A DNA stretch of 64,000 nt from Laetmonice hystrix. Its lineage: Eukaryota. The notes below the pieces were generated by a model, which was given only the letters and a program-made list of their open reading frames with translations, did not search any database and was not told the origin of the DNA. The first letter of the stretch is position 1. The number at the start of each line of letters is the position of its first letter. Positions 1-62,697 of the stretch are shown here, piece by piece. Location: positions 9,858,001-9,922,000 of the forward strand of contig OZ249441.1 in NCBI GenBank assembly GCA_965235115.1, in the 5' to 3' direction. Position numbers and translations under genes: made by a program.

Positions 1-3000
1 CCGAAATTGACCCAACTTCATTAGCCCACCATGACCCTTTAAAATAATTGCCAATCATTTTCCTCCTAGGCAGCGGTAGCCCAGGAGGAGGGGAGTCTGG
101 GGGTACCATTCATTAGTCCCCTTGCCCCGTAGGGGACTGTCAGTGACACTTCGGGTGGACCCCTTATACTACGAAATCGCCGAAATTGACCCAACTTCAT
201 TAGCCCACCATGACCCTTTAAAATAATTGCCAATCATTTTCCTCCTAGGCAGTGGTAGCCCAGGAGGAGGGGAGTCTGGGGGTACCATTCATTAGTCCCC
301 TTGCCCCGTAGGGGACTGTCAGTGACACTTCGGGTGGACCCCTTATACTACGAAATCGCCGAAATTCACCCGAATTCATTAGCCCACCATGACCCTTTAA
401 AATAATTGCCAATCATTTTCCTCCTAGGCAGCGGTAGCCCAGGAGGAGGGGAGTCTGGGAGTACCATTCATTAGTCCCCTTGCCCCGTAGGGGACTGTCA
501 GTGACACTTCGGGTGGACCCCTTATGCTATGAAATAGCCTAAATTCACCCAAATTTATTAGCCCACCATGACCCTTTAAAATAATTGCCAATCATTTTCC
601 TCCTAGGCAGCGGTAGCCCAGGAGGAGGGGAGTCTGGGAGTACCATTTATTAGTCCCCTTGCCCCGTAGGGGACTGTGAGTAAAACTTCGGGTGGACCCC
701 CTTATGCTATGAAATAGCCTAAATTCACCCAAATTCATTAGCCCACCATGACCCTTTAAAATAATTGCCAATCATTTTCCTCCTAGGCAGCGGTAGCCCA
801 GGAGGAGGGGAGTCTGGGAGTACCATTCATTAGTCCCCTTGCCCCGTAGGGGACTGTCAGTGACACTTCGGGTGGACCCCTTATACTACGAAATCGCCGA
901 AATTGACCCAACTTCATTAGCCCACCATGACCCTTTAAAATAATTGCCAATCATTTTCTTCCTAGGCAGTGGTAGCCCAGGAGGAGGGGAGTCTGGGGGT
1001 ACCATTCATTAGTCCCCTTGCCCCGTAGGGGACTGTCAGTGACACATCGGGTGGACCCCTTATACTACGAAATCGCCGAAATTGACCCAACTTCATTAGC
1101 CCACCATGACCCTTTAAAATAATTGCCAATCATTTTCCTCCTAGGCAGTGGTAGCCCAGGAGGAGGGGAGTGTGGGGGTACCATTCATTAGTCCCCTTGC
1201 CCCGTAGGGGACTGTCAGTGACACTTCGGGTGGACCCCTTATACTACGAAATCGCCGAAATTGACCCAACTTCATTAGCCCACCATGACCCTTTAAAATA
1301 ATTGCCAATCATTTTCCTCCTAGGCAGTTGTAGCCCAGGAGGAGGGGAGTCTGGGGGTACCATTCATTAGTCCCCTTGCCCCGTAGGGGACTGTCAGTGA
1401 CACATCGGGTGGACCCTTTATACTACGAAATCGCCGAAATTGACCCAACTTCATTAGCCCACCATGACCCTTTAAAATATTTGCCAATCATTTTCCTCCT
1501 AGGCAGTGGTAGCCCAGGAGGAGGGGAGTCTGGGGGTACCATTCATTAGTCCCCTTGCCCCGTAGGGGACTGTCAGTGACACTTCGGGTGGACCCCTTAT
1601 ACTACGAAATCGCCGAAATTGACCCAACTTCATTAGCCCACCATGACCCTTTAAAATAATTGCCAATCATTTTCCTCCTAGGCAGCGGTAGCCCAGGAGG
1701 AGGGGAGTCTGGGAGTACCATTCATTAGTCCCCTTGCCCCGTAGGGGACTGTGAGTAAAACTTCGGGTGGACCCCTTATGCTATGAAATAGCCTAAATTG
1801 ACCCAACTTCATTAGCCCACCATGACCCTTTAAAATAATTGCCAATCATTTTCCTCCTAGGCAGTGGTAGCCCAGGAGGAGGGGAGTGTGGGGGTACCAT
1901 TCATTAGTCCCCTTGCCCCGTAGGGGACTGTTAGTGACACATCGGGTGGACCCCTTATACTACGAAATCGCCGAAATTGACCCAACTTCATTAGCCCACC
2001 ATGACCCTTTAAAATAATTGCCAATCATTTTCCTCCTAGGCAGTGGTAGCCCAGGAGGAGGGGAGTCTGGGGGTACCATTCATTAGTCCCCTTGCCCCGT
2101 AGGGGACTGTCAGTGACACTTCGGGTGGACCCCTTATACTACGAAATCGCCGAAATTGACCCAACTTCATTAGCCCACCATGACCCTTTAAAATAATTGC
2201 CAATCATTTTCCTCCCAGGCAGCGGTAGCCCAGGAGGAGGGGAGTCTGGGAGTACCATTTATTAGTCCCCTTGCCCCGTAGGGGACTGTGAGTAAAACTT
2301 CGGGTGGACCCCCTTATGCTATGAAATAGCCTAAATTCACCCAAATTCATTAGCCCACCATGACCCTTTAAAATAATTGCCAATCATTTTCCTCCTAGGC
2401 AGCGGTAGCCCAGGAGGAGGGGAGTCTGGGAGTACCATTCATTAGTCCCCTTGCCCCGTAGGGGACTGTCAGTGACACTTCGGGTGGACCCCTTATACTA
2501 CGAAATCGCCGAAATTGACCCAACTTCATTAGCCCACCATGACCCTTTAAAATAATTGCCAATCATTTTCCTCCTAGGCAGTGGTAGCCCAGGAGGAGGG
2601 GAGTGTGGGGGTACCATTCATTAGTCCCCTTGCCCCGTAGGGGACTGTCAGTGACACTTCGGGTGGACCCCTTATACTACGAAATCGCCGAAATTGACCC
2701 AACTTCATTAGCCCACCATGACCCTTTAAAATAATTGCCAATCATTTTCCTCCTAGGCAGTTGTAGCCCAGGAGGAGGGGAGTCTGGGGGTACCATTCAT
2801 TAGTCCCCTTGCCCCGTAGGGGACTGTCAGTGACACATCGGGTGGACCCTTTATACTACGAAATCGCCGAAATTGACCCAACTTCATTAGCCCACCATGA
2901 CCCTTTAAAATAATTGCCAATCATTTTCCTCCTAGGCAGTGGTAGCCCAGGAGGAGGGGAGTCTGGGGGTACCATTCATTAGTCCCCTTGCCCCGTAGGG

Positions 3001-4250
3001 GACTGTCAGTGACACTTCGGGTGGACCCCTTATACTACGAAATCGCCGAAATTGACCCAACTTCATTAGCCCACCATGACCCTTTAAAATAATTGCCAAT
3101 CATTTTCCTCCTAGGCAGCGGTAGCCCAGGAGGAGGGGAGTCTGGGAGTACCATTCATTAGTCCCCTTGCCCCGTAGGGGACTGTGAGTAAAACTTCGGG
3201 TGGACCCCCTTATGCTATGAAATAGCCTAAATTCACCCAAATTCATTAGCCCACCATGACCCTTTAAAATAATTGCCAATCATTTTCCTCCTAGGCAGCG
3301 GTAGCCCAGGCGGAGGGGAGTCTGGGAGTACCATTCATTAGTCCCCTTGCCCCGTAGGGGACTGTGAGTAAAACTTCGGGTGGACCCCTTATGCTATGAA
3401 ATAGCCTAAATTCACCCAAATTCATTAGCCCACCATGACCCTTTAAAATAATTGCCAATCATTTTCCTCCTAGGCAGTGGTAGCCCAGGAGGAGGGGAGT
3501 CTGGGGGTACCATTCATTAGTCCCCTTGCCCCGTAGGGGACTGTCAGTGACACTTCGGGTGGACCCCTTATACTACGAAATTGCCGAAATTGACCCAACT
3601 TCATTAGCCCACCATGACCCTTTAGAATAATTGCCAATCATTTTCCTCCTAGGCAGCGGTAGCCCAGGAGGAGGGGAGTCTGGGAGTACCATTCATTAGT
3701 CCCCTTGCCCCGTAGGGGACTGTGAGTAAAACTTCGGGTGGACCCCCTTATGCTATGAAATAGCCTAAATTCACCCAAATTCATTAGCCCACCATGACCC
3801 TTTAAAATAATTGCCAATCATTTTACTCCTAGGCAGCGGTAGCCCAGGAGGAGGGGAGTCTGGGAGTACCATTCATTAGTCCCCTTGCCCCGTAGGGGAC
3901 TGTGAGTAAAACTTCGGGTGGACCCCTTATGCTATGAAATAGCCTAAATTCACCCAAATTCATTAGCCCACCATGACCCTTTAAAATAATTGCCAATCAT
4001 TTTCCTCCTAGGCAGCGGTAGCCCAGGAGGAGGGGAGTCTGGGAGTACCATTCATTAGTCCCCTTGCCCCGTAGGGGACTGTCAGTGACACTTCGGGTGG
4101 ACCCCTTATTACGAAATCGCCGAAATTGACCCAACTTCATTAGCCCACCATGACCCTTTAAAATAATTGCCAATCATTTTCCTCCTAGGCAGCGGTAGCC
4201 CAGGAGGAGGGGAGTCTGGGGGTACCATTCATTAGTCCCCTTGCCCCGTA
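1..4250. repeat. Satellite array, 179-180-bp monomer, ~24 copies, continues beyond window start
   Basis: CCGAAATTGACCCAACTTCATTAGCCCACC recurs at 1, 180, 359...; two variant classes (TGTCAGTGACAC...ATACTACG vs TGTGAGTAAAAC...ATGCTATG); ends abruptly at 4250. Confidence 0.97.
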
Positions 4251-5453
4251 ATTGCGAATCGTATCCTAGGTGGCGAATCAGATCCTGCGTTCGCGAATCG
4301 TGAACCGTGTACCGTGAACCAGATCCTAACTTCACACTGCTATACATACATACGTAAATCATTGTAGAACTCCACCGACTGCCGATCGTGGCACAACCTT
4401 GGCCAGCTCCCAGACAGACTTGTGGCGAGGTGTCGTGGAATATGTATGTAATTTCATACTAGCGCCGGCGTGGGATTGCATTTTCAATATTTCCTTATCT
4501 GAACGTGTCTCTGGGTAAAACGCCCGCATCATACAGGCAGATCTTATCATCGCATTGTGGTTTACAATTCGTAGGTACATCTTTAACAAAAACCGATTAG
4601 TCTCATCAGCAACAACAGCACAGTCTTCAGAGAAAGAAAACTTTAGCAAAAGCAGCTCTTGTCCTTACATAAAAAGGCTAAGGGAGATTAAATAATGGAC
4701 GATGGATTAAATAGGGATAATGGTGGGATGGCTGGGGATTTAGGCCGAATGATAAAGGAGTGTGCACGTGTATTAATTGATCTCCAGTGAGAGAGTTATG
4801 TGCTGGGCACCAGGTCCATCGATGAGCACCGGAAACTGCCGAGGTGGCCCCCGGACATGAATACTGTATGAAGCCACTCTCCAGCAGCGATGTCTCCATA
4901 CAGATGACGTATGGAGATACTAGCGGCCCGACTACAGCACACCTCCGGCAGTCGGAGCTGTAATCGTGATTAATATACTCCTATTAACAGGGGTCGTACA
5001 ATAAAGGGCCGATTCATACTGTATCAACGGACAGCGTGGTGTTGTAGCCGAGAAGTGATCAGTAAGAATAAGATTCTCTATGATTGCTGGATAAAAGAGC
5101 CTTCACCTTCCGTGAGATGTTCCTTGCAGTCTCCAGAACCATTTCATTTTGAGTTTAAAGACGGGATCCTCGCTATACACGCCTTATTCTGATGATGGAT
5201 TCTATCCTTTAAAGGCGAAATCGGAATGAGTCAAACCATGAGGCAGAAAACGGGGATTAAGACAGATTTTGAAATATTTCATTTCCTGTATGAACGCACA
5301 AAGTATCCGTAGAATGTTCCCATGTCATAAACAACATTGAATATCAAAGGCAACGTGGATATTGACGTCAGCATTTCTGTTATCATCGGTGCAGCAAAGT
5401 CCTGTCAGGCAAAATGTCAGGCATTCAACTAATACAAACCAGCGACTATCCTC

Positions 5454-5859
5454 GTGTTAGGACCGCCTGACTGTGTGTTAGGACCGCCTGACTGTGTTAG
5501 GACCGCCTGATTGTGTTAGGACCGCCTGACTGTGTGTTAGGACCGCCTGACTGTGTGTTAGGGCCGCCTGACTGTGTGTTAGGACCGCCTGACTGTGTGT
5601 TAGGGCCGCCTGACTGTGTGTTAGGACCGCCTGACTGTGTGTTAGGGCCGCCTGACTGTTAGGACCGCCTGATTGTGTTAGGACCGCCTGACTGTGTGTT
5701 AGGACCGCCTGACTGTGTGTTAGGACCGCCTGACTGTGTGTTAGGACCGCCTGACTGTGTGTTAGGGCCGCCTGACTGTGTTAGGACCGCCTGACGTGTT
5801 AGGACCGCCTGACTGTGTTAGGACCGCCTGACTGTGTGTCAGGACTACCTGACTGTGTG
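5454..5859. repeat. Minisatellite, 19-21-bp unit TAGGACCGCCTGACTG(TG)nT
   Basis: Direct tandem copies visible. Confidence 0.93.
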
Positions 5860-6070
5860 TAGATCCTTTAACGATGGATGATACGGCAAACTCAAACCTG
5901 AGGTCTGGGTCATTTGTCGCTGCTAATTCTATACTGCATATCGCTGGGCGCCAGTACAACAGTAGCAGTGGCAGCGATGATGGTGTGGGGGGCGGGCTAG
6001 GGGTGGGGCTGGACGGCGCGACCATTGTACCGGCCGTCCCCATCGATCACGGCCGTCTCATCGCCATGTC

Positions 6071-6662
6071 ACACAGTTATAGACCACCCCGGGCAACTCG
6101 TAATTCTGTCACACCGTCATAGACCACCCGGGCCTCGTAATTCTGTCACACCGTCATAGACCACCCCGGGCAACTCGTAATTCTGTCACACCGTCATAGA
6201 CCACCCCGGGCAACTCGTAATTCTGTCACACCGTCATAGACCACCCCGGGCCTCGTAATTCTGTCACACCGTCATAGACCACCCCGGGCAACTCGTAATT
6301 CTGTCACACCGTCATAGACCGCCCCGGGCCCCGTAATTCTGTCACACAGTCAGAGACCGACCCGGCCCCCCGTAATTCTGTCACACAGTCAGAGACCGCC
6401 CCGGGCAACTCGTAATTCTGTCACACCGTCATAGACCACCCGGGCCTCGTGATTCTGTCACACCGTCATGACCGCCCCGGGCCCCGTAATTCTGTCACAC
6501 CGTCATAGACCGCCCCGGGCCCCGTAATTCTGTCACACCGTCATAGACCGCCCCGGGCCCCGTAATTCTGTCACACAGTCATAGACCGCCCCGGGCCCCG
6601 TAATTCTGTCACACCGTCATAGACCACCCCGGCCCCGTAATTCTGTCACAACGTCATAGACT
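6071..6662. repeat. Minisatellite, 37-40-bp unit GTAATTCTGTCACACCGTCATAGACCACCCCGGGCAACTC, followed by GC-rich CCCCGG run to ~6785
   Basis: About 15 tandem copies visible. Confidence 0.92.
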
Positions 6663-6789
6663 TCTCCGGCCCCCGGGTCTCCGGGCCCCCGGCCCCCGGC
6701 CCCCGGTCCCCGGTCCCCGGCCCCCAGCCCCCGGCCCCCGGCCCTCTGGACCACCGGACACCCAGACCCCCGGGCCCCGGGCTCCCTCC

Positions 6790-7340
6790 TTGGGCGCCCC
6801 ACTCCCGCCATTTATCCAACACCATTTCTGTATCTTCGTTATAAACGCGTGCCTCAGTATGCGCGGGCGGGGAATGGAGTAACCACCAGGGGCTGGCCCA
6901 GGTGACGACTGATCGAGCACGTGGGACAACACCACTTGGGTCTAAACATGTGAGTGGGTTGACTTCCGAGTTGGTCAGCGTGGCACGTGGAGGGCCGGTG
7001 TGCGGTACGGTAGGGACATAAATCGGGTGTACATAAACGAGTCTGGCACCCAATTCACGGGAGAAAAGGCTGGCACCAGGCGAGTCCCGGGGGCACGTCA
7101 CATAGTTCACCAGGCAGTCATATATCAGGTGGGATTCACGAGATGCCAACCGACCTCCTGATCTGTGACTCCGTCTCCAGTCATTACGGACCGGCTGTAC
7201 ATTCCAGGACTCTACGTTCCCGGGATGGCATGTGGAGAGTTGGCGGTCAGCATTCCTCCTGGTTGATATTGTGGAGCAATGTGGACAATAAATGGACGCT
7301 CAAATTGTGTTACCGTGTACGGGTGACCGTGGGTCGGCAT
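6790..7340 (-). pseudogene. Possible decayed coding relic with a C2H2-like zinc finger (probably transposon-derived)
   Basis: Minus strand reads MPTHGHPYTVTQFERPF-(1-nt frameshift)-YCPHCSTISTRRNADRQLSTCH, then continues open ~150 codons (...HLIYDCLVNYVTCP...ARVYNEDTEMVLDKWREWG). Family not recognised. Confidence 0.3.
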
Positions 7341-7365
7341 GGCTGTAATACTGTGGCGGGATATA

Positions 7366-9517
7366 ATATGTACAGTAACAACTTGTCCCTGCCCGCTCGT
7401 CCATTGGTTGACACCAGGCAGTCAGTAGTATACGGAAAGTTGACTTTGGGATACTGGTATGTACAGTAACAACTTGTCCCGGCCTACCCGTCCATTGGTT
7501 GACACCAGGCAGGCAGTAGTATACGGAATGTTGACTTTGGGATACTGGTATGTACAGTAACAACTTGTCCCGGCCTACCCGTCCATTGGTTGACACCAGG
7601 CAGGCAGTAGTATACGGAAAGTTGACTTTGGGATACTGGTATGTACAGTAACAACTTGTCCCGGCCTACCCGTCCATTGGTTGACACCAGGCAGGCAGTA
7701 GTATACGGAAAGTTGACTTTGGGATACTGGTATGTACAGTAACAACTTGTCCCGGCCCACCCGTCCATTGGTTGACACCAGGCAGTCAGTAGTATACGGA
7801 AAGTTGACTTTGGGATACTGGTATGTACAGTAACAACTTGTCCCGGCCTACCCGTCCATTGGTTGACACCAGGCAGGCAGTAGTATACGGAATGTTGACT
7901 TTGGGATACTGGTATGTACAGTAACAACTTGTCCCTGCCCACTCGTCCATTGGTTGACACCAGGCAGTCAGTAGTATACGGAAAGTTGACTTTGGGATAC
8001 TGGTATGTACAGTAACAACTTGTCCCGGCCTACCCGTCCATTGGTTGACACCAGGCAGGCAGTAGTATACGGAAAGTTGACTTTGGGATACTGGTATGTA
8101 CAGTAACAACTTGTCCCGGCCCACTCGTCCATTGGTTGACACCAGGCAGTCAGTAGTATACGGAAAGTTGACGTTGGGTCGGTATGACCAGGCAGTCAGT
8201 AGTATACGGAAAGTTGACTTTGGGATACTGGTATGTACAGTAACAACTTGTCCCGGCCCACTCGTCCATTGGTTGACACCAGGCAGTCAGTAGTATACGG
8301 AAAGTTGACGTTGGGTCGGTATGACCAGGCAGTCAGTAGTATACGGAAAGTTGACTTTGGGATACTGGTATGTACAGTAACAACTTGTCCCTGCCCACTC
8401 GTCCATTGGTTGACACCAGGCAGTCAGTAGTATACGGAAAGTTGACTTTGGGCCGGTATGACCAGGCAGTCAGTAGTATACGGAAAGTTGACTTTGGGCC
8501 GGTATGACCAGGCAGTCAGTAGTATACGGAAAGTTGACTTTGGGATACTGGTATGTACAGTAACAACTTGTCCCTGCCCACTCGTCCATTGGTTGACACC
8601 AGGCAGTCAGTAGTATACGGAAAGTTGACTTTGGGCCGGTATGACCAGGCAGTCAGTAGTATACGGAAAGTTGACTTTGGGCCGGTATGACCAGGCAGTC
8701 AGTAGTATACGGAAAGTTGACTTTGGGATACTGGTATGTACAGTAACAACTTGTCCCTGCCCACTCGTCCATTGGTTGACACCAGGCAGTCAGTAGTATA
8801 CGGAAAGTTGACTTTGGGCCGGTATGACCAGGCAGTCAGTAGTATACGGAAAGTTGACTTTGGGCCGGTATGACCAGGCAGTCAGTAGTATACGGAAAGT
8901 TGACTTTGGGATACTGGTATGTACAGTAACAACTTGTCCCTGCCCACTCGTCCATTGGTTGACACCAGGCAGTCAGTAGTATACGGAAAGTTGACTTTGG
9001 GCCGGTATGACCAGGCAGTCAGTAGTATACGGAAAGTTGACTTTGGGCCGGTATGACCAGGCAGTCAGTAGTATACGGAAAGTTGACTTTGGGATACTGG
9101 TATGTACAGTAACAACTTGTCCCTGCCTACCCGTCCATTGGTTGACACACTGGTATGTACAGTAACAACTTGTCCCTGCCTACCCGTCCATTGGTTGACA
9201 CACTGGTATGTACAGTAACAACTTGTCCCTGCCCACTCGTCCATTGGTTGACACCAGGCAGTCAGTAGTATACGGAAAGTTGACTTTGGGCCGGTATGAC
9301 CAGGCAGTCAGTAGTATACGGAAAGTTAACTTTGGGCCGGTATGACCAGGCAGTCAGTAGTATACGGAAAGTTGACTTTGGGCCGGTATGACCAGGCAGT
9401 CAGTAGTATACGGAAAGTTAACTTTGGGCCGGTATGACCAGGCAGTCAGTAGTATACGGAAAGTTGACTTTGGGCCGGTATGACCAGGCAGTCAGTAGTA
9501 TACGGAAAGTTGACTTT
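7366..9517. repeat. Composite minisatellite: 91-bp unit plus 46-bp sub-unit forming 137- and 183-bp higher-order units
   Basis: ATGTACAGTAACAACTTGTCC recurs every 91 bp from 7368; the 46-bp GACCAGGCAGTCAGTAGTATACGGAAAGTTGACTTTGGGCCGGTAT unit appears from ~8185. Confidence 0.95.
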
Positions 9518-10077
9518 GCTGCACCCTGTGCTGTACTGCCACTGACCGACACGGACACTCTCAGATTATCGAGCAGCAGACCGGCCGGCCGGGCAGTGAG
9601 AGGATGGACATGGATTACCAGGTCTATAGATGCTACTACAGTATACAGGTCAGTGTTATTGTAGATATGATGTGTTCCAGTCTTTGTTCAGACGTAACGA
9701 TTATTGTAATACAGTGTCAGAAATGTTTTCTTCTAAATGAGATCCTAATCTGGAGCGTATTGCAGGAGTGACGCATACGGTCAACTTTTAACACTGAGAC
9801 TAAATCTGTTTATCTGAAGAGAGGATATTTGGATAAAAGAGGGGAGACATTTTCAAAATGCGCCAGAAAAGTCGGAAAGACATGTTAAAAAAGGACTGTC
9901 TCGAATCGGCGAGGAAATTGGAACGTAATTAATCCATTAGGAAATGTTTACTGAAGTCTGTGACAGTTTAAGATGAGGAAACCTTGTTAAAATACTAACC
10001 ACCTTCATGGTTTTATTGTTGCTGACATTCGCTCGTCAGACTGTGAAATGGCAATAGGGATGGGTCTACCAGCGTGT

Positions 10078-10125
10078 CGTGCGTGCGTGCGTGCGTGCGT
10101 GCGTGCCGTGCGTGCCGTACGTGCG
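10078..10125. repeat. (TGCG)n microsatellite
   Basis: GTGCGTGCGTGCG... run. Confidence 0.85.
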
Positions 10126-10247
10126 TCCTGTGTGCGTGCAGTGTTTTATGCCTACCGTCAAGGGACGGCAAGACAACTTTTGTAGCCAGAGTTTTCTGAG
10201 ACTATTATGAGATGTGATAACGGCGCTATACAAGTGGGCATCAATGG

Positions 10248-21745: not shown

Positions 21746-21761
21746 TACAAAGTAAATTCGG

Positions 21762-32303: not shown

Positions 32304-32316
32304 ACATCATCATCAT

Positions 32317-32374
<58 letters not shown>

Positions 32375-52070: not shown

Positions 52071-52607
52071 AGTGCTTATGATCAGTGCAGCACTCCTGCA
52101 CTGGCGTTGACCGAGTGTTCGCAGTGATCATGGCCGGAATGTTCGTAGTGCCTATGATCAGTGCAGCACTCCTGCACTGGCGTTGACCGAGTGTTCGCAG
52201 TGATCGTGGCCGGAATGTTCGTAGTGCCTATGATCAGTGCAGCACTCCTGCACTGGCGTTGACCGAGTGTTCGCAGTGATCGTGGCCGGAATGTTCGTAG
52301 TGCCTATGATCAGTGCAGCACTCCTGTACTGGCGTTGACCGAGTGTTCGCAGTGATCGTGGCCAGAAGGTTCGTAGTGCCTACATATGATCAGTGCAGCA
52401 CTCCTGCACTGGCGTTGACCGAGTGTTCGCAGTGATCCTGGCCGGAATGTTCGTAGTGCCTATGATCAGTGCAGCACTCCTGTACTGGCGTTGACCGAGT
52501 GTTCGCATGCAGTGATCCTGGCCGGAATGTTTGTAGTGCCTATGATCAGTGCAGCACTCCTGTACTGGCGTTGACCGAGTGTTTGCTATGATCCTGGCCG
52601 GAATGTT
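52071..52607. repeat. 76-bp unit x7
   Basis: TGATCAGTGCAGCACTCC at 52079, 52155... Confidence 0.95.
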
Positions 52608-53725
52608 GGCCCTGTTTGGGTCTCTCCAACACTAGCTCTCCCACCCCAGAGATCAGGAGAGAGAAACCACTGTCCTGTACCCGGCCCCAATGTTTACCGT
52701 TTAAGAAGCGACCCTGGTCAGGAAGTCACTGAGTCCGCGATAACAGCAGGGACTTGAACCGACAGGCCCCAATTTTCCAGGGGGCCTACGAACGGCTCCG
52801 GTCTACCCCCAATAAATAAGCCGGTATTTGACAACAGATCCCGGTGGTTACAAGCCAGGAAATGACTGATGGCCTACACGATCAATATTGGCACAAATGG
52901 CTGTTATTGGCGATGTGGTCAATATTGGTGAGATGGCTTTTTGACCATCTGTGGCAATCTGAAGAGTAGAGCCAAGCGGGCGGGTCGGACCGACTATCCC
53001 CACCGACCGCCGGCCGTTCAGGCGGCCCGGACCGGGCCTGTATCAAGATACGCTCACCCCGGCCCAGATAGGCACACTCCCACTCTCCGGTCGATTTCCT
53101 GAAAGTCAGAAATCGATGGTATCCGAGCCAGTTGAGTGGCAGTAGTTTGAAATGGTTGAGGTTCACACTGCCCAGTGAAGGCCCACATCGTCCGCGCCAT
53201 CACACTGCGTGGACAAATTGAAATGAGTCTCCCTGCGTGAATTCTCATCTCGGCACCTCGGAGGTGAAAGGTGGCGATATCTGGGCACCATTCCATCAGT
53301 TGATGTGGCTACCCGGCCAGACGTGACAGGCAATGGTCGATATTCTGTCCCGATCACCGCGTAACTGTGATTACCAAGGCTGTACGGTACATTCACACAC
53401 TCTAACCTCCGCTTAACGTGTGGCACCCTGGCCGGGGTGGGTGGTGGGGGTGGGGTAGCTACTGTTGGAGAGACCCAAACACGGCCATTATTCCAGTAAA
53501 GATCAATGTTCAGGGCGTTTCCACAGGTAATTTCTGTCCCCGAACCAGGTGTTAAAATGTATTACTAGATTAGCAGTTCTAATCCTTCCCATATAATACA
53601 AAGGTAACACCTGATGCTTGGAGCAGCTGAATGGGCAGGCTGCCGTGGTGTTGATACGCGTGGTGCGAGCGCAATCAGAGTTGAGAGGACAGTTTGTTTC
53701 GGTTCTCTGCTGTGCCCAACTGAAC

Positions 53726-54027
53726 CACCAAACTGGTTCACATTGACTGGTTCACCTAAACTGGTTCACCTTGACTGGTTCACCTTGACTGGTTCACCTT
53801 GACTGGTTCACCTAAACTGGTTCACCTTGACTGGTTCACCTTGACTGGTTCACATTGACTGGTTCACCTAAACTGGTTCACATTGACTGGTTCGCATTGA
53901 CTGGTTCACCTTGACTGGTTCACATTGACTGGTTCACATTGACTGGTTCACATTGACTGGTTCACATTGACTGGTTCACATTGACTGGTTCACCTAAACT
54001 GGTTCACATTGACTGGTTCACATTGAG
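53726..54027. repeat. 14-15-bp array ACTGGTTCACATTG/ACTGGTTCACCTAA
   Basis: About 20 copies. Confidence 0.92.
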
Positions 54028-54292
54028 TGGTAGTTTGAAGGCAGAGCGGCTTTCAGTAGGTGTGAAAGTCAGATAGTGACGGTCGCTCCCTGACCAGGCT
54101 TCGAAGGACATGTTCTTCTGATGATGGACCTACAGACGGAGGGTGTTGGGGTGGGGTGGGGTGGAATACCCCCCTCCCCCTCCAACCTCACTGATCAGTC
54201 GGTGTAGCAGCCGGCGGCAGGCCTATCTTCCCGGTCTAGCCATTCATCACTGTCCAACACCAGACGGATAACTCCACGCCATCGCAGGCCCA

Positions 54293-54617
54293 GACTGTAG
54301 GATTACCCTGTCTAACCTGGGCCAGATTCAGGACTACCCTGTCTAAATAGGGGCGGATCCAAGACTACGCTGTCTAATCTGGGGCGGGTCCAGACTACCC
54401 TGTCTAATTGGGGGCGGATCCAAGATTACCCTGTCTAATCTTTAGAAAATAAGCTCGGTACGGCCATGCTGTATACAATAGATCAGTGATTCCCATCCTT
54501 TAGAAAACAAGCTCGGTACGGCCATGCTGTATACAATAGATCAGTGATTCCCAACCTTTAGAAAACAAGCTCGGTACGACCATGCTGTATACAATAGATC
54601 AGTGATTCTCAACCTTT
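54293..54617. repeat. Abutting ~39-bp x4 and 58-bp x3 arrays
   Basis: ACTACCCTGTCTAAT units then CTTTAGAAAAYAAGCTCGGTACG units. Confidence 0.88.
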
Positions 54618-54699
54618 GTATGGACCCCCCCCCCCCCGACCTTATTCCCATCGCGTCATCGCTCCCTCCTTTCGGAATCACGAGTCAAAGAATTCACGA

Positions 54700-56232
54700 C
54701 GACGGTGAACACATGACGACGACTCCCCTCCCCAGCCAGCCGACGGTGTACACATGACGACGACTCCCCTCCCCAGCCAGCCGACGGTGTGCACATGACG
54801 ACTCCTACCCCTCCCCAGCCAGCCGACGGTGAACACATGACGACTCCTCCCCTCCCCAGCCAGCCGGCGGTGAACACATGACGACTCCCCCAGCCCCTCC
54901 CCAGCCAGCCGACGGTGAACACATGACGACTCCCCCAGCCCCTCCCCAGCCAGCCGACGGTGAACACATGACGACTCCTCCCCTCCCCAGCCAGCCGGCG
55001 GTGAACACATGACGACTCCCCCAGCCCCTCCCCAGCCAGCCGACGGTGAACACATGACGACTCCTCCCCTCCCCAGCCAGCCGACGGTGAACACATGACG
55101 ACTCCTCCCCTCCCCAGCCAGCCGACGGTGAACACATGACGACTCCTCCCCTCCCCAGCCAGCCGACGGTGAACACATGACGACTCCCCCAGCCCCTCCC
55201 CAGCCAGCCGACGGTGAACACATGACGACTCCCCCAGCCCCTCCCCAGCCAGCCGACGGTGAACACATGACGACTCCTCCCCTCCCCAGCCAGCCGACGG
55301 TGAACACATGACGACTCCTCCCCTCCCCAGCCAGCCGACGGTGAACACATGACGACTCCCCCAGCCCCTCCCCAGCCAGCCGACGGTGAACACATGACGA
55401 CTCCTCCCCCTCCCCAGCCAGCCGACGGTGTACACATGACGACTCCTCCCCTCCCCAGCCAGCCGACGGTGTACACATGATGACTCCTCCCCTCCCCAGC
55501 CAGCCGACGGTGAACACATGACGACTCCCCCAGCCCTCCCCAGCCAGCCGACGGTGTACACATGACGACTCCCCCAGCCCCTCCCCAGCCAGCCGACGGT
55601 GTACACATGACGACTCCCCCAGCCCCTCCCCAGCCAGCCGACGGTGTACACATGACGACTCCCCCAGCCCCTCCCCAGCCAGCCGACGGTGTACACATGA
55701 CGACTCCTCTCCTCCCCAGCCAGCCGACGGTGAACACATGACGACTCCCCCAGCCCCTCCCCAGCCAGCCGACGGTGTACACATGACGACTCCCCCAGCC
55801 CCTCCCCAGCCAGCCGACGGTGTACACATGATGACTCCCCCAGCCCCTCCCCAGCCAGCCGACGGTGTACACATGAGGACTCCCCCAACCCCTCCCCAGC
55901 CAGCCGACGGTGAACACATGACGACTCCTACCCCTCCCCAGCCAGCCGACGGTGAACACATGACGACTCCCCCAGCCCCTCCCCAGCCAGCCGACGGTGT
56001 ACACATGACGACTCCCCCAGCCCCTCCCCATCCAGCCGACGGTGAACACATAACGACGACTCCCCCTCCCCAGCCAGCCGACGGTGTACACATGACGACT
56101 CCAACCCCTCCCCAGCCAGCCGACGGTGTACACATGACGACTCCCCCAGCCCCTCCCCAGCCAGCCGACGGTGTACACATGACGACTCCCCCAGCCCCTC
56201 CCCAGCCAGCCGACGGTGAACACATGACGACT
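54700..56232. repeat. 40/45-bp minisatellite, ~36 copies
   Basis: CCCTCCCCAGCCAGCCGACGGTGAACACATGACGACT units; source of 400-540-aa spurious ORFs. Confidence 0.97.
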
Positions 56233-56559
56233 TCAGGACCGTGCTCATCACACGAACCTGGTTGACGATGAGAGTGCTTAGATATAACGTCCATAGGCGC
56301 TGTGATTTGATGAATTTATGTACTGCAGTGGCTTTTATGTTGCTCGGGTCACGAGTGCCATCGGTCTCGTCATTAACGGAAAATCGCAAGGAATCAGCAT
56401 TGCAAAGCCTTGAATATGTTGTGACCGAACCCACGGAGGCCCTGTATAAGAGGTGGAATCTGTTGTGACCGAACCCACGGATCTGTTGTGACCGAACCCA
56501 CGGATCTGTTGTGACCGAACCCACGGAGGCTCTGTATAAGAGGTGGCTTGTTTTGTTCA

Positions 56560-57090
56560 CTTCACTTCTCCAGAATTAACGTCGTCTTGGTACAATTCCA
56601 GATGCAGTGCGCCTCGTAAACGTGCCAAGAATAACCATTCCAGGAGCCATTTCTTAAATTGCCCAAGGAGTGTCGACACCGTTGTGAACGATACATGGGG
56701 AGGATTTTACGCTAACTGAAACCCTCGCCAGTTGGTCAATATATCAGTTTGCCCAAGGACAGCCAGTCTTTGTGACGATTCTGATCCTTTACATTGATGA
56801 TTGTAGTGCCCAGGTCTTTATGACTTGAATCTCTAATCATCACTGTATCCAGGAACGGTTACTCTCAGTGAATGAAGATTCCATTCATTCTGTGACCAAA
56901 CGGACACTAGAAACCCCCAAACCGTCAGGTATGTGCGGCTGACACGGTCGCTCGGGCTAGTCCATATTAACACTGCAGTTGTGGATATAGACATCAAGGC
57001 ATCACTCCCTGACATTGTAATGGCATCATTGACGTGATTACAGAATGCTGATAAAATGTCGGTCATAATTGTGTCGGTGTGGGCGGCGTG
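56560..57090 (-). pseudogene. Possible decayed coding relic of unknown family
   Basis: Minus strand gives protein-like segments in shifting frames (IMTDILSAFCNHVNDAITMSGSDALMSISTTAVL...; RDSSHKDLGTTIINVKDQNRHKDWLSLGKLIY; STLLGQFKKWLLEWLFLARLRGALHLELYQDD). Not recognised. Confidence 0.25.
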
Positions 57091-57092
57091 TA

Positions 57093-57663
57093 CTGACTGC
57101 TCCAGGCTTAATAAAGTCAGTGTGAAGGCGACCCTTTCTGACTGCCCCAGGCTTAATAAAGTCAGTGTGAAGGCGACGTTTTCTGACTGCCCCAGGCTTA
57201 ATAAAGTCAGTGTGAACACGCCGCTTTCTGACTGCCCAGGCTTAATAAAGTCAGTGTGAACGCGATGTTTTCTGACTGCCCCGAGCTTAATAAAGTCAGT
57301 GTGAACACGCCGCTTTCTGGCTGCCCCAGGCTTAATAAAGTCAGTGTGAACGCAATGTTTTCTGACTGCCCCAGGCTTAATAAAGTCAGTGTGAACGCGA
57401 TGTTTTCTGACTGCTCCAGGCTTAATAAAGTCAGTGTGAACGCGATGTTTTCTGACTGCTCCAGAATTAATAAAGTCAGTGTGAACGCGATGTTTTCTGA
57501 CTGCTCCAGAATTAATAAAGTCAGTGTGAACGCAATGTTTTCTGACTGCTCCAGGCTTAATAAAGTCAGTGTGAACGCGATGTTTTCTGACTGCTCCAGG
57601 CTTAATAAAGTTAGTGTAAACGTGATGTTTTCTGACTGCTCAAGGATTAATAAAGTCAGTGTG
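57093..57663 (+). repeat. 45-bp unit x13, each containing AATAAA on the gene-sense strand
   Basis: CTGACTGCTCCAGGCTTAATAAAGTCAGTGTGAACGCGATGTTTT; 13 AATAAA hexamers counted from 57110. Confidence 0.95.
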
Positions 57664-58417
57664 AGCATACATATTGGGTGTGACAACCGTTATAACGGAG
57701 GAGGTCGTAAGGTGAAGTCCTCCATCCCGGGGACGGGGGGGGGGGGGGGGGGGGGGTCGGGGTCGGTGACTGGGAAGGGGGGGGGGGGGGTCGGCTGTAC
57801 GCAGACAGTGGGTGTAATTACACTGACATTCACACCCACCACACATCTCACGGCTAATCAGCTCGACACTGGAAACACACTGAAAGAACCTGGCGGTGCA
57901 ATTGACATTTTGACTGTCGCTGACATCGTAAACTGAAATTATTGTCAGTAAACTCAATTAGGGTCCATTGTGTTGTAGGAGTGCTATTAATAAACATGCC
58001 GGGAAAGGAATGAGAACTGGGATGATCGGAAATGTCAGTCGTTTTATTAGGATAATTTATACCCCCCCCCCCCGACCTCTACAGAAACATCCGGAAACAA
58101 GCTTATAGATAAACAGAGCTATGTTGTTCATTTTAAAGGAGCTGTGTTCATTTAACTGACAATTAATACATTTCATAGGTCACGTGATGGGAGCGGGATA
58201 TCACCTATACATCCGCTGCACTTTGCCCTACAGTTCCTCTTTGACAGGTTCATCGGGTTCAGGGGTGTGCTGCTCTGAATGAATATATAAGGAGATCTAG
58301 GGGACTCCAGAGAGTGAGATATATCGAAGGTATACCGTTCGTCGCCCGGTTTCTGTCAACAGGTGGAACTTCAGTTAGTGTCGGAGGTATGAGTGGCTGT
58401 AAGCCGGAGGGGCGGGA

Positions 58418-58995
58418 GAGGGGCGGTCCGCACCCACAGCCGGGGGAGGGGCGAGGTGGGGGAGGGGCGGTCCGCACCCACAGCCGGGGGACAGGCGAGG
58501 TGGGGGAGGGGCGGTCCGCACCCACAGCCGGGGGACGGGCGAGGTGGGGGAGGGGCGGTCCGCACCCACAGCCGGGGGACGGGCGAGGGGCGGTCCGCAC
58601 CCACAGCCGGGGGACGGGCTAGTAACGGCGGAGGGAGTGGGGAGGGGCGGTCCGCACCCACAGCCGGGGGACGGGCGAGGTGGGGGAGGGGCGGTCCGCA
58701 CCCACAGCCGGGGGACGGGGGAGGTGGGGGAGGGGCGGTCCGCACCCACAGCCAGGGGACGGGCGAGGTGGGGGAGGGGCGGTCCGCACCCACAGCCGGG
58801 GGACGGGCCGGTAGGACCGGGCGAGGGGGGCGGCCCGCACCCGCAGCCGGTGGGACGGGCTAGTAACGCCGGGGGGGGGGGGGAGGGCGGCCCGTACCCA
58901 CAGCCGGGGGACGTGCTATTAACGCCGGGAGCGGGGGGAGTGGGGGAGGGCGGCCCGTACCCACAGCCGGTGGACGGGCCGGTAGGACCGGGCGA
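58418..58995. repeat. G-rich ~44-bp minisatellite
   Basis: GGGCGGTCCGCACCCACAGCCGGGGGACGGGCGAGGTGGGGGAG units. Confidence 0.92.
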
Positions 58996-59360
58996 GGGGG
59001 GTGACGATGGTGCTGATTGATTGCCTTTCGATACGGCACTCGATGACTTCCGTGTTGTAAGTGGTGCACACAGGTACGGTGGTCCCGCTTCTGCTGGCTC
59101 CCTCCAGCGGGCGGTGGTGGCACTAGGTGAGAGTGGTGTTTGGCACCAGCACCACCACCATTAGGTGAATCCACTGAGAATCCACAATGTTGGACCTGGG
59201 ACCGACTGTTATCACACCGACCCACACCTGTTAACCGGCCGAGATTCATTGTAGCCACCACCATACAAACTGTATGGTTCACTATCCTATTACCAACACA
59301 ATCACAGCGTCTCGGCTACAGGTAATTAGATGGTGTTACCTGTGAGATGAAATAGGTTCA

Positions 59361-59658
59361 TTGGCAGGTGGGAATCCACCAAGGATATCAATGGGCAGAT
59401 GGGAATCCACCAGGGATATCAATGGGCATATGGGAATCCACCAGGGATATCAATGGGCAGGTGGGAATCCACCAGAGATATCAATGGGCAGATGGGAATC
59501 CGACAGGGATTTCAGTGGGCAGATGGGAATCCGCCAGGGATATCAATGGGCAGATGGGAATCCGCCAGGGATATCAATGGGCATATGGGAATCCGCCAGG
59601 GATATCAATGGGCAGTTGGGAATCCACCAGAGATATCAGTGGGCATATCTGAATCCGC
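59361..59658. repeat. 31-bp array ATCAATGGGCAGATGGGAATCCACCAGGGAT
   Basis: Spacing 59369 to 59400; ~9 copies. Confidence 0.92.
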
Positions 59659-59662
59659 CAGG

Positions 59663-60587
59663 GACCTCAGACATTAGGAATCATTGATCTCAGGGTGGGA
59701 CCTCAGACATTAGAAATCAGTGACCTCAGGGTGGGACCTCTGACATTAGGAACCAGTGACCTCAGGATGGGACCTCTGACATTAGGAACCAGTGACCTCA
59801 GGGTGGGACCTCAGACATTAGGAACCAGTGACCTCAGGGTGGAACTTCTGACATTAGGAACCAGTGACCTCAGGGTGGGACCTCTGACATTAGGAACCAG
59901 TGACCTCAGGGTGGGACCTCTGACATTAGGAACCAGTGACCTCAGGATGGGACCTCTGACATTAGGAACCAGTGACCTCAGGGTGGGACTTCTGACATTA
60001 GGAACCAGTGACCTCAGGGTGGAACTTCTGACATTAGGAACCAGTGACCTCAGGGTGGGACCTCTGACATTAGGAACCAGTGACCTCAGGGTGGGACCTC
60101 TGACATTAGGAACCAGTGACCTTAGGGTGGGACCTCTGACATTAGGAACCAGTGACCTCAGGGTGGGGCCTCTGACATTAGGCACCAGTGACCTCAGGGT
60201 GGGACCTCTGACATTAGGAACCAGTGACCTCAGGGTGGGACCTCTGACATTAGGAACCAGTGACCTCAGGGTGGGACCTCTGACATTAGGAACCAGTGAC
60301 CTCAGGGTGGGACCTCTGACATTAGGAACCAGTGACCTCAGGGTGGGACCTCTGACATTAGGAACCAGTGACCTCAGGGTGGGGCCTCTGACATTAGGCA
60401 CCAGTGACCTCAGGGTGGGACCTCTGACATTAGGAACCAGTGACCTCAGGGTGGGACCTCTGACATTAGGAACCAGTGACCTCAGGGTGGGACCTCGGAC
60501 ATTAGGAACCAGTGACCTCAGGGTGGGACCTCGGACATTAGGAATCAGTGACCTCAGGGTGGGACCTCAGACATTAGGAATCAGTGA
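59663..60587. repeat. 36-bp array x~25 GACATTAGGAACCAGTGACCTCAGGGTGGGACCTCT
   Basis: Spacer-less tandem copies; source of 306-aa ORF 59695. Confidence 0.97.
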
Positions 60588-61999
60588 ACTTGTGGGTCGT
60601 AACTGGGCCAGATAAGCCGCCTCAGCCAGATACCGTGCCGCGGCTATGAACCAGCCAGTCCCGTCGTGCATTGACCACGGGAGTAATCACGTCACGTGAG
60701 TGGCCGACCTCTGGCTGGTCCCCTGTCCCATTCCTCTCTATTTCCAATGGCCGAGCTTAGGACAACGTGATTCCAGCGGGAGGAGGGGAGGGGGTCCGGT
60801 GTCCTTAGGTTCTAATACCCCAATCAATACCCCCACCACCAGGGGTCAGTGGTGACGGGGACTTTTATCTCGGCAGAGGTCGCCACCTGACAGACCAGTA
60901 ATCCGGTAACAGTGGACCAGCTATGTCAGCCACTGCCAGCGGGCAGCCAGGGATGAAACAAGCGATGTCAGTTTGAAATCGGTGAGATAATTCCCTCTCT
61001 TGATTTACCGTCTCTGGTTTAGCAGTACAACTATAGACCGCCCGGCACCCGGCGCCCGCCACTCACCGCCCGCCCCCCCCCCCCCGGGTGCCCGTATCCT
61101 CGGTGGGTTAACGTCCCGGCCCCCATCCCCCGGGATCCCCGGATGACGTGAATCCTATTAGCGGCTCGTAGAGCCGTCCGTGTCCGTGCATGTAATGATA
61201 TCTGCGGATTACAGTTGGTGACAGTAATTAACAGCTCTCGACAGCCGTGGATTTTCTCCCCTAGGTGGCGTGCAAATCGTATTGAGCTTTCCATGATCAC
61301 TGCGGCATCCGTCACGTGTCCGTCACGTGTCCGTCATGTTATTGGATAGGTCGTGTGATAGGATGATATATGATAGCTGTAGTGACGGTTCTATCTCCAT
61401 ACCGTGAAGTGGCCTCCAGGGAGCCCCAAGGCCGCCAGCCCCGACACCCGGTGTAGGTACTCCAAGGCCGCCCAGACAGTGTATAATGTACGACCAGACA
61501 TGGTGATGTTATTATTGTCATTCAGCCATCAGCCTCCGGCTTTATTGGGGGTCCTCCGGCGCTGCGGGGGGTCTGAACGCAGTATCAAGGCGGTGGGGCC
61601 ACAGCTCAGGCCACTGTCCGATTGGACGCGGCGCGCTTTGATGTATACCTGAAGTATTCAGGTGTGAAAATGTGATTTCTGGGGGGAAAACTGGTGGGAA
61701 ACTCATGAAGAATTTCTAGGGAAAACTGATGGAAAATGCGTGAAGAATTTCTGAGGACAAACTGATGAAAAACTCAGGAAGAATTTCTGGGGAGAGACTG
61801 ATAGGAGACCCATTTCTGGGGAGAGACTGATGGGAGACCCATGAAGAATTTCTGGGGACAGACAGATGGAAAACTTAAGAAATAGTGGGGGGGGGGGGGG
61901 GGGGGCGAGTGGTATGGCAGTCCAACAGGTGACGTGTCATGGTGAACAATGAGAAGTTTGTCTCAGACGTCTGACGGACAGAAAGAACAGTAAGAGATC

Positions 62000-62491
62000 G
62001 TGTTTGAATGTCGGATTGAGTGATCCTAACGCTGGGATTGTTTGGTTACAGGACCTGCAAGCAGAGATCGAGACCCACCAGGTGTTTGAATGTCGGATTG
62101 AGTGATCCTAACGCTGGGATTGTTTGGTTACAGGACCTGCAAGCAGAGATCGAGACCCACCAGGTGTTTGAATGTCGGATTGAGTGATCCTAACGCTGGG
62201 ATTGTTTGGTTACAGGACCTGCAAGCAGAGATCGAGACCCACCAGGTGTTTGAATGTCGGATTGAGTGATCCTAACGCTGGGATTGTTTGGTTACAGTAC
62301 CTGCAAGCAGAGATCGAGACCCACCAGGTGTTTGAATGTCGGATTGAGTGATCCTAACGCTGGGATTGTTTGGTTACAGGACCTGCAATCAGAGATCGAG
62401 ACCCACCGGGTGTTTGAATGTCGGATTGAGTGATCCTAACGCTGGGATTGTTTGGTTACAGGACCTGCAAGCAGAAATCGAGACCCACCAG
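62000..62491 (+). repeat. 82-bp unit x6 containing branch point, 3' splice site and first 30 nt of the dystrophin exon
   Basis: TTACAG| acceptors precede 62052, 62134, 62216, 62298, 62380 and 62462, each with CCTAAC about 25 nt upstream. Confidence 0.95.
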
Positions 62492-62697
62492 CATGTGTTT
62501 GACTCCCTCCAGTCTCAAGGCAGACAGATCGCAAGGTCCCCCGAACCTGGCGGTACGACAGCCGAGTCCAAGCCGCCCGCGGTATCAGCGCCCGGGACAG
62601 CGGCGACGGCGGCCACCGACTCGTCCAGCCTACAGCGCCGCCTGGAGGAGATGAACCAGCGCTGGGTCCGCCTCAAGACGAAATCCATGGAAATAAG
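62462..62697 (+). CDS. DMD: Internal coding exon of a dystrophin/utrophin-family gene (spectrin repeat; equivalent of vertebrate DMD exon 56), phase 0 to phase 2
   Basis: Translates DLQAEIETHQHVFDSLQSQGRQIARS(30 aa)LQRRLEEMNQRWVRLKTKSMEI-R. This aligns with human dystrophin DLQGEIEAHTDVYHNLDENSQKILRS...LQRRLDNMNFKWSELRKKSLNIR and utrophin DIQAEIDAHND...[23 protein letters not shown] (recalled). Acceptor is CCTAAC branch point ...TTGGTTACAG|GAC. Donor is ATAAG|GCGAGT at the position where the human exon ends (I-R, phase 2). Confidence 0.9.

Follow-up and report, generated by a model that had tools for sequence, protein, structure and literature searches.

The window, a stretch of 64,000 nt of Laetmonice hystrix DNA, corresponds to the 3'-most 60% of one 103.6-kb dystrophin intron. 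That the locus is the dystrophin gene (DMD/Dys orthologue) follows from the order of its domains, with spectrin matches upstream on the same contig (C6) and matches to PF09068, the dystrophin EF-hand, located 22 kb downstream on the same strand (C6:9943979-9944774), as well as from its colinearity with dystrophins of 3,273-3,914 aa in tblastn searches. In addition, the C-terminal exons showed 77% identity to a Ridgeia piscesae protein. The intron and its bounding exons are the following:

Window -41181 to 62461 (genome G000, C6:9816819-9920461), plus strand: intron-55 equivalent of dystrophin, 103,643 nt, located by exon mapping
1..62461, plus strand: 3' 62,461 nt of the intron-55 equivalent, from tblastn and the exon map
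C6:9816629-9816818, plus strand: exon-55 equivalent, 190 nt, ending in phase 0 with donor AAG/GTAGGA, from dystrophin matches
62462..62697, plus strand: exon-56 equivalent, 236 nt, starting in phase 0, from translation, tblastn and the orthologous ORFs P0160-P0162

The exon-55 equivalent lies 41 kb upstream of the window. Residues 2854-2922 of dystrophin P0129 corresponded to exon C6:9816612-9816818, which was detected directly by dystrophins P0112 and P0007, and residues 2923-2981 to 62462-62697. The translation of the latter exon is an open frame, DLQAEIETHQ...LQRRLEEMNQRWVRLKTKSMEI, aligned by tblastn to the exon-56 region in seven of the ten full-length dystrophins used; it includes a 21-codon insertion rich in Pro, Ala and Thr with respect to the human exon and ends in a GC-type donor (ATAAG/GCGAGT). 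Exon 55 of human DMD is also 190 nt long. With no residues unaccounted for between the two exons and with matching phases, the intron is the orthologue of human DMD intron 55, which likewise exceeds 100 kb, is placed between the 190-nt exon 55 and the exon starting with DLQxEIE, and hosts the Dp116 promoter and its exon S1, the same intron of UTRN being that of G-utrophin.

A first-pass annotation of this DNA had described a giant intron, with no recognisable dystrophin exon before the exon-56 equivalent. The tblastn search for hidden exons, which would make the introns shorter, was run with ten full-length dystrophins and detected no further dystrophin exon in 1-62461, and the giant intron was not only upheld but enlarged to 103.6 kb. 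A match of dystrophin P0036 at 35731-36309 was discarded as spurious, as it is of low complexity and falls inside a 20/30-nt minisatellite. No Pfam match was obtained for the ten longest non-repeat ORFs of the window, with no nested genes or transposons there, and a search of the window against Rfam gave no RNA family.

Within this intron, two sense-strand sites show the organization of a ratchet point of long introns, in which a polypyrimidine tract and YAG are directly followed by GTRAGT:

25094..25114, plus strand: candidate ratchet point RS1, tcttgtgttttacag/GTGAGT, junction 25108/25109, from motif and statistics
46883..46903, plus strand: candidate ratchet point RS2, tttatctcttttcag/GTGAGT, junction 46897/46898, from motif and statistics

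Both junctions, reported in the first-pass annotation as YAG/GTGAGT, are exact CAG/GTGAGT sequences on the plus strand, with a pyrimidine at -3 and 9/11 (RS1) and 10/11 (RS2) pyrimidines at -15 to -5. RS1 is placed 66.3 kb into the intron, with single-copy flanks and a MITE-like repeat ending about 100 nt upstream, and RS2 is found 88.1 kb into the intron, in a region present only once in the genome. No joint site of this kind occurs in the initial 66 kb of the intron. The pieces of ~25, ~22 and ~16 kb into which the two junctions had been said to divide the region are in fact of 66, 22 and 16 kb; the 25-kb piece was a consequence of the window edge, as 41,181 nt of the intron precede the window and the first piece is thus 66.3 kb long.

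The bare 9-mer YAGGTRAGT was present on the plus strand of the intron as often as expected by chance (2 observed, 1.79 expected), with 4 observed and 1.86 expected on both strands of the window. The chance reading suggested by this count alone was revised once acceptor and donor quality were tested jointly. The 9-mer preceded by a strong pyrimidine tract was observed twice against 0.045 expected, with two or more instances in 0/1500 local-composition shuffles, and a looser threshold of at least 8/11 pyrimidines gave P = 0.01, the pyrimidine thresholds having been chosen after the sites were seen. The intron contains 530 sense-strand AGGT sequences, 10 of them with a strong acceptor context and two continuing as RAGT, both of the latter being included in those 10 (expected 0.038, P ~0.0007). 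On the antisense strand of the intron, no joint acceptor-donor site was found, against two on the sense strand. The whole genome contains 269 instances of TTTT(N)CAGGTRAGT, compared to 162 of the reversed control, and 115 of the GTGAGT form, compared to 52, counts taken irrespective of host-gene orientation at the other sites. As this amounts to no more than a 1.7-2.2-fold excess of the strict motif, many of these instances are background. A hand count along contigs C1-C12 gave seven same-strand neighbour pairs within 50 kb and one opposite-strand pair, where about 1.5 are expected for each strand arrangement; RS1 and RS2 are the sole strict-motif matches in C6:9.5-10.0 Mb.

The ratchet points of Drosophila (Ubx, kuz and others) follow the consensus (y)n ncag/gtaagt on the sense strand of introns longer than 100 kb, as here (PMC2773006, PMC6110457, PMC8605326); the 5' splice site is regenerated there, as it would be here, and the density of around 2 sites per 100 kb is that of the fly. 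In introns longer than 50 kb of insects and sea urchin, the published density per 100 kb is 0.5-2.2 sites for the sense strand and ~0.1 for the complement (PMC2773006). In contrast, the donor of the candidate Laetmonice sites is GTGAGT instead of GTAAGT, and, unlike Drosophila ratchet points, they are unevenly placed, towards the last third of the intron. Our literature search found no published ratchet case for this animal group. In human DMD, the same gene, long introns are removed in several steps, although the recursive cases validated in the human muscle cells examined do not include intron 55 (PMC4829307), and most of the human recursive events lack a strictly juxtaposed motif. In the contigs of a relative (ENA ERZ25767047), reached through exon-56 and EF-hand ORFs, the 10 kb upstream of exon 56 showed neither AG/GTRAGT nor any alignable island, exons alone being alignable; the neighbouring gene calls there read through TGA. 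A search with the exon-55 peptide gave no homologous ORF.

It is possible, though we consider it doubtful, that both AG/GTGAGT sites are chance or cryptic sequences without any role, the intron being removed in one step or in several unrelated ones and only the internal exon described below being real. The 9-mer count, equal to its expectation, would fit such an explanation, as would the similar numbers of AG/GTRAGT on the sense and antisense strands over 264 kb, the modest genome-wide enrichment, the uneven placement with a first segment of 66 kb, and our own estimate that ~1-3 same-strand pairs per genome are expected at the observed density. However, both sites combine an acceptor context of the top 2% with a perfect donor, both share the sense strand of a single giant intron, same-strand pairing of such sites is seen across the genome, and large invertebrate introns are known to be enriched in them (PMC2773006). 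Recursive splicing at RS1 and RS2, as put forward in the first-pass annotation, is plausible, favoured by the joint-motif statistics and the same-strand pairing genome-wide, whereas the idea of an evenly ratcheted intron fails on the siteless first 66 kb. Stepwise removal of the intron is, in our opinion, the somewhat likelier course.

Between both candidate ratchet points lies a third feature:

32987..33037, plus strand: candidate alternative first coding exon of a Dp116/Dp205-like short isoform, from homology, profile and phase

An in-phase candidate first exon had already been proposed between the two junctions, and it could be confirmed as a 17-codon frame, MIGLNISLQDLLESFEE, that starts with the ATG at 32987, the first after an in-frame TAG (32915-32917) and with G at -3, and ends in the phase-0 donor GAG/GTGTGT at 33037/33038, fitting the phase-0 start of the exon at 62462. 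Exon 55 lies 74.2 kb upstream of it, and exon 56 follows after 29.4 kb. Annotated short isoforms from several phyla begin with a brief peptide of their own, whose junction falls precisely on the DLQxE with which exon 56 starts, and in those of gastropods, spiders, termites and a butterfly, this N-terminal peptide, spliced directly onto exon 56, matches that of the candidate exon. Ungapped alignment with the pre-exon-56 peptides of Bulinus, Candidula, Trichonephila, Araneus, Zootermopsis, Cryptotermes and Leptosia, taken from reference proteins that are mostly automatic gene models, several of them unreviewed, gave the consensus xIxLxxVLxxLLxxFEx for the seven short isoforms and the candidate exon, with 29-41% identity and F15 and E16 invariant. 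In the termite, butterfly, spider and gastropod models, as here, the unique N-terminus ends in ...LLxxFEx directly before exon 56; in the termites, the motif is preceded by 200-490 unique low-complexity residues, whereas here and in two gastropods, with the same peptide length of 17 residues, the frame starts at the motif.

Four of those species were used to build a profile, without the peptide of the window itself, and this was scanned over the six frames of the 103.6-kb intron. The top site was 32987, with a score of 28.0, followed by 14.5 for the next best one in the intron, and the best-site score of shuffled sequences (n = 60) was 14.2 +/- 1.8, with a maximum of 21.5. ATG, right phase and GT donor coincide at this match. 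Pairwise tblastn of single peptides against the exon gave E values of ~1-3, which are not significant. CpG observed/expected values near the candidate exon are ordinary (0.6-0.8), with no promoter signal in them. A possible acceptor, ccccag, was also seen at around 32945, so that the candidate exon might be an internal one within a more extended 5' region.

The similarity is limited to protostome forms, as the vertebrate Dp116 exon S1 peptide MQQDQCCSPRFKLKMLHRKTYHVK gave only noise against the intron; human S1 encodes MLHRKTYHVK, with no visible similarity to the peptide found here, and lies 755 bp before exon 56, compared to 29.4 kb in our case. No counterpart in the intron was found either for the N-termini of Batillaria, Elysia, Bradybaena, Tubulanus, Pediculus, Cherax and vertebrate Dp116 or for the long unique N-termini of insects. 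In the relative mentioned above, a search of the 10 kb that precede exon 56 gave no match to the 17-residue peptide.

That the 17 codons are a chance look-alike or a disused relic, with no active internal promoter, seems unlikely. The shortness of the peptide, the pairwise E values, the lack of a CpG island and of a match in those 10 kb of the relative point in that direction; against them stand a profile score far outside the null distribution, the coincidence of ATG, correct phase and GT donor, the 17 residues shared with two gastropods, and the literature, from which a promoter in intron 55 is expected (PMC1790709). Such a promoter is thought to be ancient on the basis of sea urchin SuDp98 and Drosophila Dp205, and an association of intragenic promoters with introns of large size has been described (PMC1790709). 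In addition, the human exon S1 is found in DMD intron 55 (PMC5664101), and insect Dp205-like forms, spider "isoform D" models and SuDp98 are said to arise in the orthologous intron (PMC1790709). The elements of an in-intron exon of the Dp116/G-utrophin/Dp205 type, namely the ATG, the phase-0 GT donor and the conserved peptide, are present, and we consider it quite probable that the intron carries an alternative first coding exon spliced in frame onto exon 56. This exon may well be transcribed from its own promoter. Of the internal promoters that the first-pass annotation had proposed in the plural, one such exon, not several, was found; for that one, the claim is supported because its 17-residue peptide is homologous across phyla, in agreement with PMC1790709.

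Immediately downstream of both candidate ratchet points, the sequence offers a second donor-like GT:

25109..25153, plus strand: putative 45-nt cryptic exon after RS1, ending in AAG/GTAACA, with a phase-0 TAG at codon 12, from sequence and translation
46898..46958, plus strand: putative 61-nt cryptic exon after RS2, ending in CAG/GTAGGA, with a phase-0 TAG at codon 14, from sequence and translation

The GTAGGA after RS2 is also the hexamer of the native exon-55 donor, and donor-like GTs so close downstream (+45 and +61 nt) are often expected by chance. A cryptic exon following the site and delimited by a 5' splice site further on would be the mark of vertebrate-type recursion (RS-exon). That RS1 and RS2 are not way-stations but the acceptors of stop-containing cassette exons of 45 and 61 nt, included at times and lowering dystrophin output through unproductive splicing, is very improbable: both GTs and both in-frame stops would allow it, and pseudoexons are well known in human DMD (PMC7175933), but a cassette exon does not need a consensus donor at its acceptor, which is the defining mark of a ratchet point, and GTAACA and GTAGGA are weaker donors than the regenerated GTGAGT.

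Taken as a whole, an intron with an alternative first coding exon and removal in steps at two sites is the reading to which we lean slightly. In this scheme, exon 55 would first be joined at 25109, regenerating AAG/GTGAGT, a better donor than the native AAG/GTAGGA, and the second and last joins would take place at 46898 and 62462, respectively. A transcript started inside the intron would have its 17-codon exon spliced in frame onto exon 56 and would use 46898 only, the midpoint of its 29-kb intron (RS2 is located at 47% of the 29.4 kb). A short dystrophin is the predicted product; with about two spectrin repeats and the WW/EF/ZZ end, it would share the architecture of vertebrate Dp116, G-utrophin and insect Dp205-like forms; in Dp116 and G-utrophin, a short alternative first exon is likewise in frame with exon 56, giving proteins of ~950-1000 residues (PMC5664101, PMC1790709). 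More tentatively, a pan-protostome first exon (annelid, mollusc, chelicerate, insect) could derive from the same ancient promoter as Dp116 and G-utrophin, with recursion at 46898 tuned not just to the full-length transcript but also to the one from the internal promoter.

With a first exon common to annelids, molluscs, spiders and insects in the Dp116 intron, the "ancient promoter" idea (PMC1790709) would become an orthology open to testing. If true, such a shared exon would provide simple invertebrate models for a Dp116-like isoform, and, if the two sites are used, fly-type recursive splicing would be extended to a lophotrochozoan and to the largest conserved intron of dystrophin. Both mechanisms were already known, the gain being one of breadth and not of principle. 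To our knowledge, little is understood of the short isoforms of dystrophin, and no specific function is known for Dp116.

Finally, the first-pass annotation had estimated that minisatellites make up ~40% of the intron, close to what was measured, as tandem repeats (minisatellite arrays) amount to 45% in the window and to 44.8% when the intron is taken in full. The proposal, also made there, that recursive splicing would preserve accuracy over this repeat load is speculative. One of the arrays reaches into the coding sequence:

62000..62491, plus strand: 82-nt tandem array, 6 copies, 98% matching, from sequence

Its 82-nt unit joins the terminal 52 nt of the intron, acceptor included, to the first 30 nt of the exon-56 equivalent. 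The array is absent from the relative (contigs ENA ERZ25767047). The sequencing runs found for Laetmonice are three DNA runs of one sample, with even coverage by DNA contigs. In short-read contigs, the depth of the unit was 272-375, compared to ~50 for single-copy sequence.

Full-length dystrophins (3,273-3,914 residues; sources limpet, bug, wasp, horseshoe crab and crinoid) were retrieved with a conserved EF-hand exon, and a tblastn search of ten full-length dystrophins against 264 kb around the window (G000:C6:9858001-9922000, plus strand; G000 is the 627 Mb, 35-contig assembly and C6 the contig carrying the window) revealed exons colinear with dystrophin. Spectrin-repeat exons lie upstream on C6, and dystrophin-type EF-hand exons lie on the same strand, 22 kb downstream; for the C-terminal exons, the nearest match was the annelid Ridgeia piscesae (77% identity), which makes the source organism a probable annelid. 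The features of the locus are the following.

C6:9816612-9816818 (match): exon-55 equivalent, the counterpart of human DMD exon 55, detected by the horseshoe-crab and scorpion proteins.
Window 25108|25109 and 46897|46898, plus strand: CAG|GTGAGT junctions in the sequence, the candidate ratchet points RS1 and RS2.
Window 32987 (ATG) to 33037|33038 (donor GAG|GTGTGT), plus strand: internal exon, a candidate alternative first coding exon encoding MIGLNISLQDLLESFEE.
Window 62000-62491: six copies (98% identity) of an 82-nt unit made up of the terminal 52 nt of the intron (acceptor included) and the opening 30 nt of exon 56 (DLQAEIETHQ).
Window 62462-62697, plus strand: exon-56 equivalent, a 78-codon open stretch beginning DLQAEIETHQ and finishing RWVRLKTKSMEI.

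The exon-55 equivalent has the acceptor ttgttacag|G and the donor TATAAG|GTAGGA, ends in phase 0 and measures 190 nt, as does human exon 55. In the crinoid protein, 69 residues separate the stretches 2807-2853 and 2923-2981, so that no residue is left unaccounted for. Because this exon was located upstream of the window, the intron between the two exons could be bounded at C6:9816819-9920461, 103,643 nt, of which the window contains the final 62,461 nt. The giant intron lacking recognisable exons that the first-pass annotation had proposed is, therefore, real and larger than claimed, and the tblastn search found no dystrophin exon in the window other than 62462-62697. The even partition into pieces of 25, 22 and 16 kb, in contrast, is not supported, since the intron extends upstream of the window. 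Human intron 55 also exceeds 100 kb (PMC5664101). Tandem repeats make up 44.8% of the whole intron (45% within the window), and a link between recursive splicing and this minisatellite load is not supported. A second dystrophin match, at window 35731-36309, fell inside a minisatellite and was discarded as spurious; no Pfam domain was found in ten long non-repeat ORFs, and no Rfam family was detected. In addition, at window 60650-61900, some 20 single-base differences and 5 small insertions in 1.2 kb set the short-read contigs apart from the assembly, which points to very high heterozygosity in the intron.

For the internal exon, the last 939 residues of the limpet protein served as the query for proteins of Dp116-like length, and the residues preceding the start of exon 56 were inspected. 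Two gastropod short forms open with 17 residues (MIQLTANIWKLLRHFEN and MIELTFVIKNLLRHFEH), and the same kind of motif closes the unique N-termini of two spiders, two termites and one butterfly, with an ungapped consensus xIxLxxVLxxLLxxFEx in which F15 and E16 are invariant. Four of these species, without the window's own peptide, supplied a position matrix that was scanned over the whole intron in six frames; its top match was position 32987 on the plus strand, scoring 28.0 against 14.5 for the second best. In 60 shuffled introns, the top scores had a mean of 14.2 +/- 1.8 and peaked at 21.5. The match starts with an ATG, which is the first after an in-frame stop, and closes on a GT whose phase suits exon 56. 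These coincidences are the grounds on which we read the internal exon as truly orthologous to the one that short isoforms of other protostomes use; the evidence for this is good, and homology makes the exon highly probable.

The in-phase first exon predicted between the two junctions was thus recovered, and of the internal promoters proposed for the intron, one candidate first exon with a homologous peptide stood, but no second alternative exon was found in the intron with the N-terminal peptides of other short isoforms. CpG observed/expected is ordinary near the internal exon, and, given a possible acceptor near 32945, another exon could lie upstream. Within window 32182-32917, also upstream, there are a (CAG)26 tract encoding His/Gln runs and a Ser/Thr/Asn-rich ORF (32675-32917) in the frame of the internal exon, with one TAG between them. 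Both recall the unique, low-complexity N-termini seen in the short isoforms of termites, and the region could be coding, 5' UTR or nothing.

The proposed orthology fits published statements that a promoter in the intron 55 counterpart is older than the vertebrate paralogues, that the orthologous intron is where fly Dp205 and sea urchin SuDp98 originate, and that large introns correlate with intragenic promoters (PMC1790709, citing Wang 1998 and Neuman 2005). A unique N-terminus and two spectrin repeats are found in Dp205 (PMC2840664), and vertebrate Dp116 forms start MLHRKTYHVK|DLQ, matching the publication (PMC5664101). Giant intron, internal exon and recursive splicing are each already a known kind of thing.

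Regarding recursive splicing, the two near-perfect YAG|GTGAGT junctions were present at RS1 and RS2, each in a single-copy island between arrays. The count of the bare 9-mer is chance: four on both window strands (1.86 expected) and two on the intron's sense strand (1.79 expected), with AG|GTRAGT about as common on either strand of the 264-kb region when genuine exon donors are left out of the count. The joint quality of acceptor and donor at the two sites, in contrast, is not chance. A strong acceptor context (Y at -3 plus at least 9/11 pyrimidines at -15..-5) was found in 10 of the 530 AGGT on the sense strand, and RAGT follows in 2 of the 530, both within those ten. The expectation for such joint sites is 0.038 (Poisson P ~0.0007). 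The thresholds were picked with the sites already in view; a hand-worked, rank-based combination of counts still gives ~0.001. Shuffles preserving composition in 200-nt blocks gave 0.045 expected sites and two in 0 of 1500 trials, with P = 0.01 at the looser threshold of 8/11; no joint site occurs on the intron's antisense strand.

RS1 lies at 64% of the full intron and RS2 at 47% of the 29.4-kb intron downstream of the internal exon; fly recursive sites are found in most introns >40 kb and tend toward midpoints (PMC6110457). A first splicing step would replace the native donor AAG|GTAGGA by the stronger AAG|GTGAGT. The stop-containing "RS-exons" of 45 and 61 nt described earlier are present and on their own constitute weak evidence. 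About 100 nt upstream of RS1, and not including it, window 24901-25007 holds a MITE-like dispersed element with inverted halves and at least 48 copies genome-wide (79-94% identity).

The strict motif TTTT(N)CAGGTRAGT was counted at 269 places in the genome and its reversed control at 162 (GTGAGT form, 115 against 52; GTAAGT form, 154 against 110); for the strict motif, the genome-wide excess is put at 1.7-2.2-fold. Within C6:9.5-10.0 Mb, only RS1 and RS2 carry it. Neighbour pairs within 50 kb, counted by hand on contigs C1-C12, listed completely, were seven same-strand against one opposite-strand, where by our estimate about 1.5 of each are expected. In insects and sea urchin, large introns hold 0.5-2.2 ratchet-type sites per 100 kb, against ~0.1 on the complement (PMC2773006). 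Recursive splicing here, judged from sequence and unproven, seems somewhat the likelier outcome: the joint motif beyond chance and the same-strand pairing speak for it, whereas the bare 9-mer and the uneven partition do not. Further same-strand series of the strict motif, spaced 18-38 kb, were seen at five loci elsewhere in the genome.

G000:C2:3226043-3299212, minus strand: same-strand series.
G000:C1:15934599-15962332, minus strand: same-strand series.
G000:C13:21096115-21114188, plus strand: same-strand series.
G000:C19:1361926-1394744, plus strand: same-strand series.
G000:C5:17163491-17192922, plus strand: same-strand series.

In a related genome (ENA ERZ25767047), the exon-56 orthologue sits on contig ctg38640_41x_l at about 715,917-716,120, reverse strand. 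Likeness at the locus is confined to exons (70-88% nucleotide identity), and both the internal exon and AG|GTRAGT are absent from the 10 kb that precede exon 56 there, the upstream stretch covered. Called genes neighbouring that locus read through TGA. Outside the window, two short islands between the WW/EF-hand exons, C6:9943593-9943667 (L030:7903-7977) and C6:9945629-9945661 (L030:11261-11293), are kept in the relative at 76-88% identity; unmatched in the protein searches, each may represent a small exon or a regulatory element.

Arrays abut both splice sites of the exon-56 equivalent, which is, therefore, an island. At window 62695-63165, the exon shows a GC donor (ATAAG|GCGAGT), GT in the relative, and a 52-nt minisatellite of nine units starts at +4 of that donor. 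On the acceptor side, every 82-nt unit finishes CAG|GTGTTT, so that five decoy acceptors or 30-nt in-frame mini-exons would precede the true acceptor. In short-read DNA contigs of one sample, the unit has a depth of 272-375 against ~50 for single-copy sequence, supporting about six copies; the relative, in contrast, has a single acceptor at exon 56.
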